This document shows, piece after piece, positions 2,641-12,591 of a stretch of DNA of 64,000 nucleotides. Location: the NCBI GenBank assembly GCA_004431415.1, contig QPMI01000542.1:372001-436000 (forward strand), read 5' to 3'. This DNA comes from Cyanophora paradoxa CCMP329. Taxonomy: Eukaryota; Plantae; Glaucophyta. The notes under the pieces were generated by a model that saw nothing but the letters and a program-made list of their open reading frames with translations, was not told the origin of the DNA and did no database searches. The position numbers and the translations under genes are program-made. The first letter of the stretch is position 1. Each line of letters opens with the position of its first letter.

Positions 2641-3407
2641 GACAGCGCTTCGAATTCCGTATCAATTAATCTTAGCTTTGGATCGTGATCGATCAAGCGC
2701 TCCGTGCAACGGCCCAACGCTGAGGCTGGGCCGCCCCCGCATATATATGCATCGTAGCGTGAATGATCATGAGGCCGTACAGCCTAAATTCGGTTTTTCA
2801 TGCCGCAGTGCCAACATGTACATTAATATTAATATTACGTTTCGCAAGAGGGGATCCGGGCTGCTCGTCGGCAGCTACCGGATATAATCAGAGAATGCTA
2901 GCCTGCTGTCAGCCCTGGCCATGGGGCCATTATCCACTACCCGGGTAGTCTTGGCCGTCATACCGGTACTGTACGACACTACCAGGGGTACGCTCCGTTC
3001 AGGAGGGTCTGCGGGGACCTATTATGCCAGCGGCAGCCCTGCAGCTGGCTCTGGAACTACGGCGGCTCCCACCACAGCCCCGAACACGATCGCGAGCGCC
3101 AAGGGCAAAGAAAAAGCCTACCCGTATTAGAAAAGCCTGTCTACATTAGGGCTCGTTTGCACGCAGCAGCGCGTGTGTCCTGACTGGTTTCAATTGTACA
3201 TTACGCCCCGTTTGGCAAGCAATCCATGCGAATCAATGCTATCGGAAAAGAGCAATAAAGTACGCTCCGTTCAGGAAGGTCTGCGGGGGCCTATGCAGGA
3301 AAGAGCGTGGGGGTTGAATAAAGCAGCAGTACCGAAGCTTGCTTCTTAAAGCTAAAAGTCACGAATCGATACATCCTAAAGTAAAAAGGGTTTCAATCGC
3401 CCGCTGG

Positions 3408-6400
3408 CTACGGGGCGACGGTGAAGATGCACGCGGTGCTGGCGACGAAGGCCACGATGAACGCGGCCCGCACCCACGCGTTCACTTCCCGCAGCCGCTC
3501 GATGTACACCTGCCGCGGAGCAGGCGCGAGCGTGAGAAGCTTTGCAGGGGCGGCCCTAGAATATTTAGGCTCTGCATGTATGGCCACCTCGCGGTTCTGG
3601 ACGCGAAGCTCGCCGAAGCGAATGCCGTAGATGTCGAAGACGTGGTACCGGCGCGGCAGAACCTGCGCGAGGAGACAGTCCGCCGAGTGAGCGATTATTG
3701 CAAGCCGGTGTGGAGGGGGCGCACCGGGGGCACGAAGAACCCCGCGAGGCGCTTGGGGTCGGGGGCCGGCGGGGGCTGATTCCGGGCCTCCTCCTGCACA
3801 TCGCTAAACGTTGAGCGAAATTGCAGTATTTAGAGCGGTTGGGCGGGGGGCTCGCGGACCTCAGTGGCGCGGGTGGTGAGGAGGCCGTCCTTGAAGACGA
3901 TGTCGCCGAGACCCGGCGCCGGCGCCACCTGCAGCGCAGGGCGGACTGAGTGTCGCGCGGCAGTGTAAACTGAGCCGCCGGCACCTCGGCCGACGCGGCG
4001 ATCTGCTGGAGGCGGATCGAGCCGCTCCGGGCAAAGAAGCGGGTGAGGGCCGTCGAGCCCGTCCCTGGCGTCCTGTGCGTCATGATCCGCGCCGCCGCTT
4101 CGTGCTCGGCGTCGGCCGCGTGCATATTGATCGCCGTTGAGTTCGGGATCGAAGCCTCGGTCGGCGTCGGGAAGCCCAGGGCCCCCGCGCTGGACGCCAC
4201 CGGCACGCGGCCTGCCGTCTGCAGGAGCTGCACGTTCGGCTGGGGTGCGATGGGCGCCAGCGCCTGCCCGCGGGGCGACGCGCTGGCGGTCTTCGCGTCC
4301 ACTGTGGAGGCCGGGGCGGCCTGCGGCTGCGAGCCCTTGAACTGCGCGAGGGGCGGTGAACTTGCGAGCGCGCCAGCGGACGCAATAAGAAGCGGAGACC
4401 ATCGGAACGCACCTTGAGGACGGCCTCGTAGATGTGCTCGAAGATGCGCTCGCGGTCGTCGCCCTTGCCGCCGTCGTCCATGCGGCGCAGCTCGTTGACG
4501 ACCCAGCTGCCCCGGCCCGCCTTCAGCCACGAAACGAGCGGCGCGTCTCCGCGAAGCAGACGGCGGCGCGCACACGAGGTGCCCAAAGGCGACGTTGACG
4601 GCGAGCCCCACGATGCTGAACGCGTACGCCTGCGACCGGAGTGAGGCGTGAAAGCATGTAGCAACATAGCTATATTTTTGTATTTGGAAACTGTCTTTTG
4701 CGCTGCTGTCGTTTGGAAACTCATACACAGCTCTTCATTCTCAATTATAATTGTTCATCGCGATTCTGCACCTGGAATGTGAAGGCGCCCATCTTGGTCA
4801 TGTAGGAGACGGGCGGCGAGAGGTCCGCGAGGACGAAAGAGAAGCCGAGCGTTCCGAGCAGCGCCGTCTCGCACGCCACCGTCCGGTTCTCGCTCTCCAC
4901 GGGCCTGAAGGGGAAAAGAGGGTCGCGATTATTTGTTCTGGAGCGCCGAGCTTCTGAAGCGCTGAAAACGCACTGGAAGAGCGAGAAGATGACCGAAATG
5001 CTGATGAGCAGAAGAGGCACCAGTAAGTTGATCACGTTGTACGTTCGGATGCGCTGCAAGGTCGCTTTGAATTAGCTTCTTTGAACTGAACAATCCGCAG
5101 GAATTGCACGGACCCGAGCACGGAAGCTCGTGGTTAGGATGTCGTAGCCTGCATTGATCCCAGTGTCCGTTGTCTCCACCTCTTGCTTGTACGACTCGTA
5201 GGTCCTGGGGTGGCGAGCGGCCGCGAAGTGTGTGCATTAGGCTTTCTATTTGCGCGTACATTACCGAAGCGAGCGTGCCGCGACGTACCACGACGGGTCG
5301 ACAATGCCGCGCATGTTGGCCTCCTGTCCGTTGAGTTTCGCTCCAGTTATGGGCGCAAACGTCAGCTGGCTTCCGTCGAAGCTGTTGCTCCGAAGCTGCA
5401 CGCCGTTTCTGAATAAGCGAACTATACGCAAAGCTGAGTTTAAACGCGACAGACGCTGGTACCTGGATAGAAAGCGTCTGCGCAATTCGTTAGGACGGGC
5501 GAAAACAACGTGCTTCCCCCGCGCATTCCAGAGCGCACCTGAATGTCGAACGGGAAATCTTTGACATTGATGTCCACTGCGCAAAATCTGCATTCAGCAC
5601 CGCGCGCGGGTCGCCGCATGGGGTCGCACCCGCGAAGTCCTGGATGAACCGCTGATACAGTCTGACGGTGCCGTTCTGCGCGAGAGACAGTGTCGCAAGC
5701 GATCCGATCGGCACTTGGAATGAGAGTGTTTTTGCAGCGGCGGTCTCGCACATTGAACCGGATGACCTTGCCGTCGAACCCGTCCGGCTTGCTCTGCGGA
5801 GTTCGATCAGGACGTGTTGAAGCAGTCGTAGGGCGCTGCGCCGCACCAGGACGTTGACAAAAGTCAGCCGCGGGCTCCAAATCGCGTTCAGGATCGAGGT
5901 GTCGTTTTCGGCGACGGGGGCCAGGTTCGGGTTCTTGAAGCGCGAATCAAACCTGGCGATTAAAGAAGCGGATTTGAAGAGTCAGTCGCAAATATCGCTG
6001 TAGCGAAGGCGGCGGAGCGCACCACTCCTGCAACAGCGTCAAGTCAACCTTCATCGATTGGTCCTTCGTCTGCGAAAACCGGTCATTGCATACAAAATCA
6101 ATCGACGCCGACATCGCGCATGCGCACCGAGACATCGATGACCGAATTGACCTGAACGGTGACCTCGACCCGCACCGGCTGCGGGCTGACGTCCAGCACC
6201 GCCGCCAGCAGGTGCCGCGCCCCTCGCCGCCCGCCCGCCGTGTCAGCAACCAAGGCGACGGGCCCCTCCGTCGGTGGCTGGCTCGGGTCATAGCCGAAAG
6301 GCATCGCCGGCCTTCCCGTCTTCTCAACTGTCACCCGCGAATCCGAAAGGCCGTGCTCCGTTCCCGGGGCGGGCATGGCAAGGTTGACCTGCAGACCAGC

Positions 6401-9400
6401 CGCAATCAGCAGCAATCCAAGAGGCGCTGCACGTTGTCCGGCTGTCTCGCACGTCGAGGGCGTTGCCGGCGGTGCGGAGGATGCCGCCGTATGAATCGAA
6501 CGCGTCGACGCTGAGGACGTCCAGGTACTCGCCCTCGGGCGTCCCCTCGCCCACCTGCACCGAGTACCGGAACACCAGCGTCGTCTGATTGCAACGCCTC
6601 CCATCAGCTCAAATAAGAGAGAATGCAGTTTAATAGAAGGCATCCCACCTTGGTGTCCGGGTTGGCGTAGCCGAGGAGGTACGCGTAGGCGAGCGTGTTG
6701 AGGGCGATGCGCGGCGTGCCGTACAGGCGCGCCTCCCGCGTCTTCGCCGCGTCCTGCACGTTCAGCGGGTCCAGCTGCGCGCGCGCGCGCCAATCTCGCG
6801 TGAGCGGCGAGAGCGACACTGCAATCGCTGCAGAGAATCCAACATCTGCAGAGCCGCACGAGGAGCTGGTAATCCACGGGCTTGGAGAAGGTAACGAGGA
6901 TGTCCACATCCTGCGGCGCGTGCGGCATTGGTGGACGCGCATGCACAGGCGGAGACGGTCCCCGGCTCGCGCGTCAAACACGCACCCCAATGCGACCGGG
7001 AGCGAGGCCCACGGTGACGTTCGTGAACTGGTATAAAGCATAAGTAAATAGAAAGAAGGATAAATCACGCTCAGTCCTCCATTACCTTCGAGGCGACTCC
7101 AACGATCGTGGCGGAAAAGGTGTCGATCTGAATTGGAAATAAGACAGCAGATCCAGATATGCGAAAACCGCGTACCTTCACCCACGCCTCGTAGGGGTTG
7201 TTCTGATTCTCGAGCGGGTAGAATCCCAGAATCTTCGAGAGCGCGACAGGCACGACCATGCCCGCTGATTCGAATGATTAGAGTTGCTCACACAAGGAAC
7301 GAGGTTGAATTCGAATCGACAAGCTTAAGGCGGCGCTCACTCGCGGCGGGGCTGCAGCCTGTGGCATTGACCGCGGTGTCGTACGGTTTCTCGATCTCGA
7401 TGCTCTCGTACAGCCCGTCCTCGGGCTGCGTCGCGACGTATCAGCATCGACTTTAGCTACGCACACATGTACACGTCTTATATATTTCATGTTCCGTTGC
7501 GCACCTCGACAGATCTGCGAAACACGATCTGTCTTTGGCCCGCCACGTTGCCCTGCGAAATGACCGGTAAATTAACGTGTGAAAAATGCCGCCGCCGGGC
7601 AAAATTTAAGAAGCGCCTGCGCACCTGGACGATAGCGTTGAACTCCTCGCGCGGAGTAAACTGAAATAGGCCGACGCTTGTGCGCAGAGTCGGTCGGCAG
7701 GCGTCCAGGGCGGTGGAGGTGTTGTCGACGTCCTTCGGGCGCTGGAAGACCTGCGCAGATTACGAGAAAACAGTGTGAGCGGCCTGCAGCTGTGCAAAAT
7801 TCATCGCAAACGCGTCGCACCACGTCGTCGAAGGTAAGAATAAGATAGATGACCGAGTGGAGCGAGAAGACATCACGGCCCCCGCCGACCGCTCCGAATA
7901 CCTCGAGCTGCGTGCAACGATCGATTATATATTGAAATTGCCGCTTGAATGTTGCGCGCGGAATCGATCGTTGCCTCTCAAATGAGAAATGCGTTTTTAA
8001 ACCATGTACAGATCGTACCCGGCGCGCGGTGCTGGAGCGCTGGATGACGAGGCCGGCGGCCGCTAGGCCGCTCGCCGCGTCCGTTACCGCCCTCAGCGCC
8101 TCTTCGTTCGCGACAACTGAGGCACAAGATAATGCGATGAGCTTTCTTCAGCGAGAGTCATCATGATCAGAAGGTTTTGTAGGACTCACTGTCCAGGCCG
8201 TTTGCCGACGTGATTACGGCACCGTTCGTCACAAACTTGACGACCTCAAGGGGCTTCCCGTTTGTCGTCTCGCCAGACTGTGCATTTCGCATCTCCACGT
8301 CAGTTGTCGATGATTCGAATTCGAATGGAAGTCTAAATGCGGTTTAATTGCACGCACCGCGACCATGTATCGGAAAAGAAGGGTGGAATTATCGTTAGGG
8401 AAGTAGCCGACAAAAGAGGCCTCGCCGCCCGAGTTCAGGTCGAGGTACGGCCGCCCGACGGCTGCGCGAAAAATCGACGATCGATATCAGCGCCGCACGA
8501 TTATAATTGCTAAAAGCCTGGTACAGGGCCCGGGGTCGCGGACCAAAGGGGTTGACGCCGTTGTCGGAAGCCACCACAAAAATTACAGGCTTGCTGAATA
8601 GAATCGCTGTGACAAAAATAATCGAGAGTTAAATAGAATGAAGCAGGAGGTATTCAATATCTGTTTGTTCGGGAACTGACCTATGTCGATTGCGTCGCCG
8701 CTGTAGAACACTGATTTCGGGTCCTTGCGTGTGCTGACGCCGATCATCCGCGGGGCTGTTGCAGAACACCGCTCAGATCATTTTCTGCAGCCGAGCACGC
8801 ACTAGAACTGAGCTCGCGCTCGGGGGTTTTGGCGCACGGAGGGTGTCTACGCCGACGGAGGTCACTCCGGGCTCACAGCCGCTCGGCGAGGTCAAGGACC
8901 GCTTGCATGGCGAGAAGACGAGGTCTGCAGGGAGACTTGAGTACAGCTGCAGCTTAGACAGGCGCCCGGCGCCCTCTCTCGAATGCACCTGCGAGGCTCA
9001 CGGTCCGCTTCGAACCTGCTTTCGCGGACGCGAATCGCATCCCCCTGCAGAGACTCTGAGATCTAGAGGGAGCGCGCACACGCGCCTCGGCAAAAGCTAA
9101 GCCGAGTCGCACTTGGAGGAACACTCGTTGGAGATGATGAGGCCCTGGGACGCGGGGCTCCTCACCGCGATCGCCCTCGAGTTCTCGCCCTTGAGAACCC
9201 TGCCGGAAATGGAAGATATTGAGCGTAAAGATTAAGCTGAAAGCTTATAATTAGAGAAAGCCGAAGCTTAAGCTACAAAGCGCACTTGTGGCGGTAGACG
9301 AGCGTGTGGTCGCTGATTGTGGCGTGGCTCGACCCGCCGAGCCCAGCGACGGCGTCGTTGCGCGGGAGCGCCTGCCAGTCTTCGATGGTCCGGAAATTGC

Positions 9401-11313
9401 TGCCGGGGCATAGAATGAGCTCGAATGACATTGCTGCCAGCGATCGCAATTCTTGATAAAAGATAGCTTTTAAGATGTTGTTTTAAATTTCGACGCAAGA
9501 TGGGATTATAATTATTTGAGCGCACAGGTTGACTGCAATAGAACAGTTTGGTGGAAGAGGGTCATCCTGCGGAGCGGTTGAACTTTGAAAGCCTTCGAAG
9601 TCGCAAATGCAGAGTTGCGGTGACGGGCGCACGATGACCCCGTCGAAAGTGATCGCCACCAACATCACGTCATTGACGGAAAGGGTCGTGCCGGGCTCAG
9701 CCCCGATCTACGATTGACATCGAAGGGCCGCACTGAGCGCGATGGAGAGCGGGGTGTACACAAATGCATGATTCCGAACCAGCTGTAACGACACGGGAGC
9801 AAGCTCCGGGTCGAGCTTGATGCGCTTCGACTGCAAGCAAAGCTGAATTAGACATATCGATGGACCGACAAAAGGACTGAATGGCGCACCGTGTCGACGA
9901 CGGGGTCTGCATTGAGTGGGTTGGAGGGGTCGGGCTCGACCTCGAAGTACCCGCTGGGCGCGTGCGTCGTGTTGTCGAGCGTGATGTACTGCCGATTTCG
10001 AAAAGGTTAAGCGAAAACGATTGCGTTCGAGCTTAAGAAGACTCTGAGAGGAGACGGATCGGAGCATTGCACCTCCAAAATGCCGAACGCGGTCGTGATG
10101 TAGTTGCAGTTCGCGAGGTTCCTGCACGCTCGGAATCACACGAAGAGTCGAATTCATATAATTAAAGCCTAAAAGCTGAAGGCCGCTGACACGATGGGGG
10201 CGCGGAGGGGCTCGAGGACGGGGTCCTCGTCGTTGACGACGTGGCGGAAGTAGAGGCGCGAGGTCGCGTGGTGGGACGCCCACGGCGTCTGCGCCCTGCC
10301 GCGCCGCGCGTCAAGTGAAAAACATAAACAAGGGTCTTATAGAAAATCGCTTGAAGCTGGAGTTCTCTCTAAGGTTGGTAAATAGTAATGCATTTGGTAA
10401 TGATAATATATAAATAAAGCAGGCAATGGTTTCGGGATGGGCTTCGGGATACCGGGGCACGTGGGGGACGCGGAAGGTGGCGTTGGTGCTCGGAGCGCTC
10501 ACGATGATGTAAGGGCTGCAGCCGGGCTGGGCCAGCATGGCCGCTGCGCCACGGAAAGGGTGGGAAAGTCGTGGTCAGCCATAAGAGAGGCGGAATTTAT
10601 TGATTCGCACCCTCGTCAACGCTACAGGTGTGGTGGCCCGAGGCCTGGCAGGAGAACTCGCCCTCATCGATCCCGGGGGGGTCATCGACGTCGACCACCA
10701 GCCACAGCTCGCCTGCGCCGGTGGCGGCTCGTGATCAGCTTGAAGCCGGAGGGAGGGCGCGGGCGGCCCAGACGGACTCTTGCGGCCGAAGACGAGCTTT
10801 GTTGTCGGGTCCGTCGAAGCGGCGTACACGCGCTGCGACGGCGTCATCAGGGCCCGGGTCGGGCGGTTTAAATCAGGGCCCGGGTCGGGTCGGGTCGGGC
10901 ACCTGAACAGCGGCGTAGAATGTTTCGGCGAGCTCGAAGCCGACGGGGGGCGGCGGCGGCGGCACAACCACGATCGACGAGGCATTGATCGCCGCGGCGG
11001 AGGGCAGCAGCGCCAGCATTCCGACGGCCACCAGCGCGCACAGAGCGACCCCCACGCTTGGCCGCAGCCCGCGGCCGAGCGCGAGCTCTAAATTGGGATC
11101 CCGCCGACGCGAGCCGCGGTTGACGCCGTGGGGCTTAAGCTTGAGCGCTGGCGTGGGCTCGCCCGCGTGCACGTGCGCGGGGCCAGCGCCCGGCCCCCCT
11201 GCGGTGGCGCCGGAGGCGTATGCGGCCGCGGGGTGGCCATGGTTGCGGCGCCGCGGCCGGCGGCGCGCCCAAACAATGGGCGTGCAGTTGCGCGCGGGGC
11301 TGCAGCTGTCCAT
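3408..11313 (-). CDS. Pentameric ligand-gated ion channel subunit (Cys-less, Pro-loop, ELIC/GLIC-like) with a very large N-terminal ectodomain of five tandem repeat modules; tens of short introns
   Basis: The spliced minus-strand product reads YDPSQPP..PVRVEVTVQVNSVIDVS|TKDQSMKVDLTLLQEW|FDSRF..NAIWSPRLTFVNV..NGTVRLYQRFIQDFA|VDINVKDFPFDIQ|TLSIQ|LRSNSFDGSQLTF..W..YDILTTSFRAR. Then come M1 RIRTYNVINLLVPLLLISISVIFSLF, M2 ENRTVACETALLGTLGFSFVLADLSPPVSYMTKMG, M3 AYAFSIVGLAVNVAFGHL, a long loop, and M4 VNAWVRAAFIVAFVASTACIFTVAP with the stop at 3408-3410. A signal-like hydrophobic stretch, VGVALCALVAVGMLALLPSAAA, lies in the first exon. Confidence 0.9.
6320..10850 (-). repeat. Five tandem beta-rich protein repeat modules (predicted Ig-like) in the channel ectodomain
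   Basis: The motif L.F.(Y/H).V..(G/D) recurs five times: LYFRHVVNDED (~10240), HTLVYRHK|VLKGENS (~9290), STLLFRYMVA|SGETT (~8370), QIVFRRSVE|PED (~7520), TTLVFRYSVQVGEGT (~6570). Most are preceded by an I.V.F-type strand (VMLVAITFDGVIV, YSGDAIDI, IYLILTFDDVV, VDILVTFSKPV) and, where clear, by G.P.(L/I).LN (VGRPYLDLNSGGEASFVGY, YGTPRIALNTLAYAYLLGY). Confidence 0.75.
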
Positions 11314-11754
11314 GCTTTCCGATGGCCGTCTGCTTTCCGATGACTCGGCGATCTAAGAACAGCACGCGCACGCGGCCGCTATAGATAGCTTTAGATCGGA
11401 TATAGCTGTCCCGGCTGGCCCGGCGGCCTCGCCAAGTCGACGTCCCCGGCCCGCTCCGAGGGCTCCGCCTCCACCCAAGTGGGACGCAGTCGCCGCGGCG
11501 CGAAGCTGCCGCAGTGCGCTGCGCTCCAGGCTGCAGGCCAGACGAAGGCCAGACGAAGGCTCGGTAGCTCGGCCGCGGGCGCGCGCGCCGCGCGCTGCTG
11601 TGCTATTCTAAGATGACTGCAGCTATAGCTACCGCGTCGCCGCAGTGCCGCGCGCGCGCCGGGGCGTGCCCTGAAGAACAGGAGGTCCGGGGCGCAAGGG
11701 TCGCCACTGCTAGGCTAAACGTGCCCTGAATAGGGGCCAAGGGTGCCCTGACGG

Positions 11755-11795
11755 TCGGGACTCGGGACTCGGGAGTCGGGAGTCGGGACTCGGGA
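11755..11795 (+). repeat. (TCGGGAS)n 7-bp tandem repeat upstream of the channel gene
   Basis: tcgggac/tcgggag repeated about 6 times. Confidence 0.8.
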
Positions 11796-12591
11796 GGCCG
11801 CGGGGCCGGCGCGGGCTAGCCGGTTCTTGGCCCCTAAGTTGGGCCCTAACTTTAGTAAGCGGCCTAGGCCTAGCCTAGTAGGCAGCCTATGGCCTACTAC
11901 CCCGGCCTAGGCGTACGCGTACTCCAGTACTCAGTATGTAGCGCGCGCTAGCGCTCCCGCAGAGCCTCGGAGTCCCGCTGACCGCGCACCTGCATGGCCG
12001 GCGACTCCGATCAGCGCGATGCGGCGCCGGCCGCCGGCGGCGCAGCCGTTGCTGCTGCAGAGACTCGAGCTGTTTTCTATCAATCCGTTAAAGCCCGAGT
12101 CTCCTATCTTTGACCGATTTGAAAACCTCCGCAAGAGGCTCCGAGGAGGAGCGAACCGAGCAAACCGTTGAACCTTCTTGGGTCACGCCGACTCACGCGC
12201 GCAGCTCGCGATCGCGACTCGCGAGTCCGACGGTCGCGACTTCAAGGCGCTCGCTCGCGGTACCCCGGGGCCCAGGCGGCGAGCGTCACACGTGCGCATG
12301 CACGCTAGCGCTGCGCGTGTCTCGACTCTCAGAGTCTCGAGATGGGCGCCAGGCTCCGCCAGCCCGGCGCGCGCCCGCGCGCCGCCCGCGGGCGGCGCCC
12401 GTGATCATGATTCATGATGACGAATCATGACTCAGTGATTCCGATCAAGGTTTCCTGTCCCCTCTAGATCTGAGGCTCCGACTCGGGCTCCGAGGCCCCC
12501 GAACCTCGCCGAGTCGGCGGAATTTGTTCTGATCCGAAGTGCAGCCGGCCGCGCCGGCCCCCAGTACAGAGCGGGGCCCTCAGGCCCAGGC

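Follow-up and report, generated by a model that had tools for sequence, protein, structure and literature searches.

Does a single gene of the glaucophyte Cyanophora paradoxa encode both a complete ion channel of the pentameric ligand-gated class (pLGIC) and a very large array of surface-protein-like modules in front of it, as an initial annotation of the locus had proposed? The locus lies in a stretch of 64,000 nucleotides (nt) of strain CCMP329 (contig QPMI01000542.1, positions 372,001 to 436,000; hereafter the window), which is G+C-rich eukaryotic DNA with short introns, and its minus strand from 3408 to 11313 carries one intron-rich gene. Our answer is that this is very probably one expressed gene in which a five-module N-terminal extension is fused in frame to a complete pLGIC without the Cys-loop cysteines. 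In the modelled protein a hydrophobic segment, which may be a signal or an anchor, precedes the five modules; these are followed by a Pro-rich linker, the Cys-less ligand-binding domain and transmembrane helices M1 to M4. The gene and the exon in which its two parts meet are as follows.

3408 to 11313, minus strand: whole modelled coding region, with 47 exons, 46 introns of 48-157 nt and a coding sequence of 4467 nt for 1488 amino acids (aa)
6128 to 6388, minus strand: fusion exon, encoding the last strand of module 5, the Pro-rich linker and the start of the ligand-binding domain; both edges fixed by RNA joints

The fusion exon runs from the end of module 5 (VNLAM...SDSRVTVE) through a 48-aa Pro-rich linker (aa 916-963) into strand beta-1 of the channel, PVRVEVTVQVNSVIDVS, and between module 5 and beta-1 it has neither a stop nor a start codon, nor a signal sequence. 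In a search of 1.84 billion representative proteins, its 87 aa were found at residues 417-503 of P0001, the locus's own product (100% identity), and at residues 667-752 of P0002 (66% identity). P0001 and P0002 are EukProt gene models of C. paradoxa on contigs tig00021070 and tig00021312, respectively, and together with P0006 and P0007 they make up the paralog set used here (P0002 is 1238 aa long). All four Cyanophora paralogs keep the whole fusion, with 95%, 66%, and 42% identity to the gene at the locus, and the junction PFGYDPSQPP is kept down to the lowest of these values. Since one exon spans both parts, RNA contigs cross its two borders, and four paralogs keep the arrangement, the fusion does not depend on how exons were joined. 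This bears out the initial annotation, which had made the same argument from the same exon before its exact edges were known from RNA.

Modules and channel are conserved to a similar degree. Compared with P0007, modules 3-5 are 45-52% identical, the ligand-binding domain is 41% identical, and the pore domain is 51% identical. M1-M3 is the best-conserved part among the paralogs (84% and 51%), and the M3-M4 loop is the least conserved. That the modules are conserved as well as the channel speaks for function and against an artefact of gene modelling.

The gene model itself was built from RNA joints outward. Introns are very dense at the locus (46 in 7.9 kb, with a median length of 70 nt), many exons measure 40-60 nt, and a map of third-position G+C content showed about 45 short coding islands with changing frames. 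RNA-like contigs from four public runs labelled Cyanophora paradoxa, the RNA nature of which was a guess of the software, were mapped onto 3350-9349; 9-14% of the sampled words of the locus were present in public runs, the level expected of a spliced transcript. In contigs from three samples 17 introns were skipped, and after each joint had been shifted inside its reported ambiguity every one of these introns read GT..AG on the minus strand. Where a contig skips introns at canonical splice sites, cDNA is its only possible source. The joints yielded strong donor and acceptor consensus sequences, G/GTGCG and GCAG/ (the slash marks the splice site). One contig of 886 nt (X3 record 14) joined eleven exons, from the exon encoding M2 (4784-4903) up to 6320 in the fusion exon, and the RNA-joined exons from 6388 to 3411 formed a single open frame ending with a stop at 3408-3410. 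Upstream of 6388, the exons were chained by dynamic programming with codon log-odds and splice matrices learned from the part confirmed by RNA, and the model was then refined with homology to the four annotated proteins. The modelled exon edges match the RNA pieces at 8461-8358, 8277-8190, 7750-7625, 7552-7505, 7425, and 6584. All searches were run with exon sequences and the database proteins P0001, P0002, P0006, and P0007, the spliced model being used only for checks of frame, coordinates and identity.

P0001 (1019 aa) maps to this locus and is 100% identical to aa 478-1488 of the model, save for an annotation insert of 8 aa. The insert (residues 638-645, YVAARSLR, window positions about 5289-5204) arises through an alternative donor site and is absent from the RNA joint of 5203 to 5288 and from all three other paralogs; the P0001 annotation is probably wrong at this point. 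Beginning in module 3, P0001 also probably misses about 477 N-terminal residues.

The C-terminal part of the protein, about 525 aa, constitutes a complete Cys-less channel unit resembling the prokaryotic channel ELIC, and by its sequence the product belongs to the pLGIC (Pro-loop receptor) superfamily. Its features are listed below.

5042 to 6178, minus strand: ligand-binding domain, aa 964-1148, Cys-less; Pfam PF02931 on P0001, all its exons joined by X3 record 14
5539 to 5556, minus strand: Pro-loop FPFDIQ, its exon confirmed by RNA; the four paralogs share F, P, F, and D without exception
5463 to 5477, minus strand: microexon of 15 nt encoding TLSIQ, directly after the Pro-loop; seen as 12 extra letters within the joint of 5398 to 5539 in three runs and placed by GT..AG
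4500 to 5041, minus strand: transmembrane helices M1, M2, and M3, from residue-level alignment to ELIC M1-M3, hydropathy peaks and RNA joints
3486 to 4499, minus strand: cytoplasmic M3-M4 loop of about 230 aa, with six RNA-confirmed introns inside and the frame kept
3408 to 3485, minus strand: M4 helix (3417-3485; hydropathy 2.08; conserved in the four paralogs), a two-residue tail and the stop codon (3408-3410)

The microexon is also present in P0001 and P0002 and missing from the annotated P0006. The pLGIC motifs named in the initial annotation were all recovered on the minus strand where it had placed them: in addition to FPFDIQ, M3, and M4, these are the pre-M1 Arg and the M1 Pro at about 5041-4976, and an M2 at 4885-4811 with T6', L9', and P23'. 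M2 further carries V2', G13', F16', and D20', with E at -2'. Pfam Neur_chan_LBD (PF02931) matched P0001 with E 4.3e-19 (69.2 bits; cut-off 26) and the three other paralogs with E values of 1e-15 to 2e-19, the paralogs scoring 58-70 bits. A channel profile built from the four paralogs was compared with solved structures and matched ELIC best (1e-27), followed by the glycine receptor and the nicotinic acetylcholine receptor (about 1e-20) and GLIC (1e-17). The alignment with ELIC covered its residues 7-283 and was collinear from beta-1 to M3, with T6', L9', F16', and P23' in register. At the positions of the two cysteines that lie 13 residues apart in the metazoan Cys-loop, the sequence has Val and Leu (V-DINVKDFPFDIQT-L), and none of the four paralogs has Cys at either position, which places them outside the Cys-loop receptors in the strict sense. 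The annotated picture of a complete Cys-less pLGIC behind a very large ectodomain of surface-protein-like modules thus held, with the match to ELIC and an RNA-confirmed frame in its support.

Other searches with the channel part were less productive. Pfam applied to raw open stretches and single exons gave nothing useful, the exons being only 5-119 aa long. Protein searches limited by shared words and length, and of little use for distant relatives, returned nothing at E 1e-5 for P0001 residues 470-1019 and only the paralogs for residues 480-770. When bacterial and archaeal genomes were scanned with the channel profile, no relative could be confirmed.

The N-terminal extension was divided into five domain-sized units.

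9819 to 10989, minus strand: module 1, aa 109-308, kind A, Cys-containing, the least certain; conserved with P0006, P0002, and P0007
8851 to 9818, minus strand: module 2, aa 309-470, kind A; P0002 and P0007 are collinear with it
8040 to 8850, minus strand: module 3, aa 471-610, kind B, Big_5-like immunoglobulin-like (Ig-like) domain; RNA pieces 8358-8461 and 8190-8277, intron 8278-8357
7176 to 8039, minus strand: module 4, aa 611-762, kind A, two conserved Cys; RNA contig 7751-7624 + 7552-7505 + 7425 downward
6323 to 7127, minus strand: module 5, aa 763-915, kind B, Big_5-like Ig-like domain; RNA piece 6451-6584

We compared the modules with one another by hhalign, using the paralog alignments. 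Module 3 matched module 5 (E 2e-19), module 2 matched module 4 (E 8e-8, probability 94.5%) and module 1 matched module 4 only weakly (E 7e-3), while nothing significant was found between these two kinds. The order is therefore A-A-B-A-B, and the five tandem modules of the initial annotation, correct in number, are not one repeat copied five times. Two conserved cysteines are found in kind A (modules 1, 2, and 4). Kind B (modules 3 and 5) matched 7-10 repeats in each of the metagenomic proteins P0008, P0009, and P0010, two of which bear Pfam Big_5; P0008 and P0009, the Big_5-bearing repeat proteins, were found with E values of 1.5e-12 and 4.1e-11 in a search of 5.8 billion proteins. The consensus common to kind B and the bacterial repeats reads ...GTPRL.L..G...A.Y...G..TL.FRYTV..GD.... 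P0009 stands in a run of five adjacent genes (L001:8001-19828) on a contig that is compact and prokaryote-like; the run encodes Big_5/Big_12/Big_13 repeat proteins and a beta-propeller protein of the RCC1/WD40 type.

The AlphaFold2 model of module 5 was all-beta, with a predicted local distance difference test score (pLDDT) of 85. In the ESM Atlas it matched Big_5, Big_12, Big_13, and SbsA clusters with template modelling scores of 0.70-0.76, and with a slower structural aligner the best solved structures were a sialic acid esterase beta-sandwich (Z 7.2) and then the S-layer protein SbsC (Z 6.9). Foldseek against the PDB returned no match for this model at E values up to 0.001. From sequence and predicted structure together, modules 3 and 5 are assigned as homologs of bacterial Big_5-type Ig-like repeats with a beta-sandwich fold; for kind A (modules 1, 2, and 4) an Ig-like fold is weakly suggested by the model of module 4. 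The likeness to large bacterial surface proteins that the initial annotation had pointed out for the repeat is thus found in modules 3 and 5, while no link to stramenopiles, which it had also named, was found, the organism being a glaucophyte.

The N-terminus begins with the following feature.

10990 to 11055, minus strand: hydrophobic signal-peptide or signal-anchor segment VGVALCALVAVGMLALLPSAAA, aa 87-108, with a Kyte-Doolittle peak of 2.33

This segment sits in a stretch of high third-position G+C in frame 1 and is followed by a cleavage-like site, AAA/I. The signal-like segment of the initial annotation thus exists as a hydrophobic peak; it starts 86 residues past the modelled ATG at 11313, in an exon known from the model. 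A second gene model had a different exon 1 (11313-11042 + 10902-10778), which we set aside, as it was driven by the arbitrary annotated start of P0006; it also cuts the frame 1 stretch of high third-position G+C. Two short tandem repeats lie just upstream of the modelled start, one at 11754-11796 (about six copies of the 7-nt TCGGGAC) and one at 11845-11896 (about two copies of a 23-nt unit).

Several observations weigh against the reading of one gene for five modules and a complete channel. No single transcript with modules 1-5 plus the channel was seen among the RNA contigs mapped on 3350-9349. The border of module 5 with the fusion exon is best spanned by a contig that has a VILGL variant and hence comes from P0006, the gene's own contig at this junction having just 28 nt on the far side, and several contigs of 95-99% identity, as well as loose ends at 4313 and 6468, probably derive from P0006 too. 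Exon 1 (11313-10903), with the start codon and the signal segment, is model-based, as the RNA mapping covered 3350-9349; the second gene model offers an exon 1 without the hydrophobic segment, and a signal peptide is present in none of the four annotated proteins. Of the two Pfam families that the initial annotation had proposed as a check, Neur_chan_LBD was found as described above, but Neur_chan_memb (PF02932) scored 13.7 bits on P0001, below its cut-off of 28.1. The Pfam gathering threshold was passed neither by the N-terminal parts of P0001, P0002, and P0007 nor by modules 3 and 5 alone. Finally, the AlphaFold2 model of module 4 had a pLDDT of 73 and gave weak Ig-like or IPT matches only (Z up to 5).

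As for P0006 itself (tig00021070_g17905), it is an expressed tandem paralog on the same contig, outside the window, and its protein is about 95% identical. RNA contig X1 record 6 departs from the window at 6376-6386 just as P0006 does (VILGL for VNLAM).

The points that concern the N-terminus would fit a shorter protein, in which the fusion is real and translation starts in module 3, as in P0001 (from window position 8747), modules 1-2 and the hydrophobic segment belonging to another transcript or to an untranslated leader. The upper limit of the RNA mapping at 9349 and the two competing models of exon 1 leave room for such a protein. Nevertheless, modules 1-2 are part of a single frame in all of P0002, P0006, and P0007, the frame at the locus can be followed without a break to 11313 by third-position G+C and splice sites, and the RNA depth at 9150-9349 fits the exons of module 2; moreover, a start in module 3 leaves no signal sequence to place the ligand-binding domain outside the membrane. 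We consider the shorter protein unlikely.

The sub-threshold score of Neur_chan_memb could instead point to a decaying or non-conducting relative of pLGICs, a scaffold or adhesion protein keeping the fold only, and degenerate copies are frequent in lineage-specific expansions. Against this, the gene is expressed, with an unbroken frame across its 47 exons, the pore-lining residues T6', L9', F16', and P23' equal those of ELIC position by position, and it is M1-M3 that is best conserved among the paralogs, all of which makes a loss of channel function a distinctly improbable explanation. That two neighbouring genes, one for a secreted Ig-repeat protein and one for an ordinary pLGIC, were wrongly merged is largely refuted and next to negligible: gene predictors do join neighbours in compact genomes, and no one contig covers everything, but the fusion exon encodes both sides, RNA contigs pass both its borders, and the paralogs keep the junction.

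The reading of one gene for the extension and the channel can be set beside known systems. ELIC and GLIC share with the Cyanophora channel the lack of the Cys-loop disulfide and the presence of the Pro-loop, and ELIC, its closest sequence match, also has the same residues at 6', 9', 16', and 23'. They are, however, only about 320 aa long, with a short M3-M4 loop and no N-terminal accessory domains, whereas the Cyanophora protein has about 850 additional N-terminal residues and a loop of about 230 aa, which is a typical eukaryotic trait. Prokaryotic pLGICs can bear PBP-I or MCP-N plus Cache domains at the N-terminus (PMC549065), and among those with N-terminal domains DeCLIC is the sole characterised one according to a 2025 paper (PMC12664993). 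In these proteins, as in the one described here, the accessory domains lie between the signal sequence and the ligand-binding domain (PMC549065, PMC12664993). The differences are in the host, DeCLIC and its kin being bacterial or archaeal and Cyanophora eukaryotic, in the size of the extension, which is about three times larger here, and in its nature: DeCLIC bears a pair of jelly-roll lobes with calcium sites, the extensions of the others are sensor domains for small molecules, and the Cyanophora protein has five modules that are Ig-like or putatively so. Neither a DeCLIC chain nor a jelly roll of the collagenase or Tk-SP type came up in the top 50 when modules 4 and 5 were matched to structures; the top matches were Ig-like, IPT or S-layer domains.

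Unicellular eukaryotes were surveyed for pLGICs in 2016 by Jaiteh, Taly and Henin, who reported them from stramenopiles, chlorophytes, opisthokonts and alveolates (PMC4795631). The Cys-less protist pLGICs of that survey likewise have no Cys-loop cysteines; its text names neither glaucophytes nor N-terminal accessory domains. Compared with bacterial surface proteins built of Big_5/Big_12/SbsA-SbsC repeats, modules 3 and 5 align to the repeats and share the predicted beta-sandwich, but the Cyanophora modules are below the Pfam threshold, contain inserts, occur in alternation with modules of a second kind and are mounted on an ion channel, not on an S-layer or adhesin. The searchable literature contained no description of this architecture in any eukaryote, as the initial annotation had surmised, nor anything relevant on Cyanophora or glaucophytes together with pLGICs, and it reports accessory N-terminal domains of pLGICs from prokaryotes only (PMC549065, PMC12664993). 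Outside Cyanophora the architecture was not found in word-based protein searches, which are blind to distant relatives.

How such a protein might work can be outlined by analogy. The hydrophobic N-terminal segment would bring the extension, together with the ligand-binding domain, to the outer side of the membrane, an extracellular placement with which the N-x-S/T sites and paired Cys residues agree. Five subunits would form a cation-selective pore, since there is E at -2', D at 20' and no Pro/Ala anion motif, in analogy with GLIC and nicotinic receptors; its hydrophobic gate would be at L9' and F16', and a small ligand at the subunit interfaces would gate it. The Ig-like array would be an accessory domain, serving as a spacer or stalk, as a site that binds an extracellular macromolecule or a glycan, or as a modulator of gating in the manner of DeCLIC. 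The pentamer, and with it the figure of 25 modules per pentamer, would follow solely from family membership, and contact- or mechano-sensing by five long arms, as suggested in the initial annotation, is speculation. A bolder proposal, to which we give little credence at present, is that of a private glaucophyte pLGIC family in which the 850-residue Ig-like array links the gating of a cation channel to the extracellular binding of a macromolecule, glycan or surface, with 25 domains per pentamer. If true, it would mean a tethered contact or matrix sensor on the chassis of a neurotransmitter receptor, and the first eukaryotic pLGIC with accessory N-terminal domains.

What we have here is a lineage-specific, expressed family of pLGICs with a giant Ig-like ectodomain. 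The finding would add glaucophytes to the lineages that bear pLGICs. The bacterial flavour of both its parts, an ELIC-like core and Big_5-like repeats, raises the question of the gene's origin, and the Cyanophora family would offer structural biologists a natural case in which to study the communication between an accessory ectodomain and the gate. A eukaryotic family with such a modular Ig-like extension, much larger than those of prokaryotes, would show that the pLGIC core can couple to large extracellular assemblies in eukaryotes.

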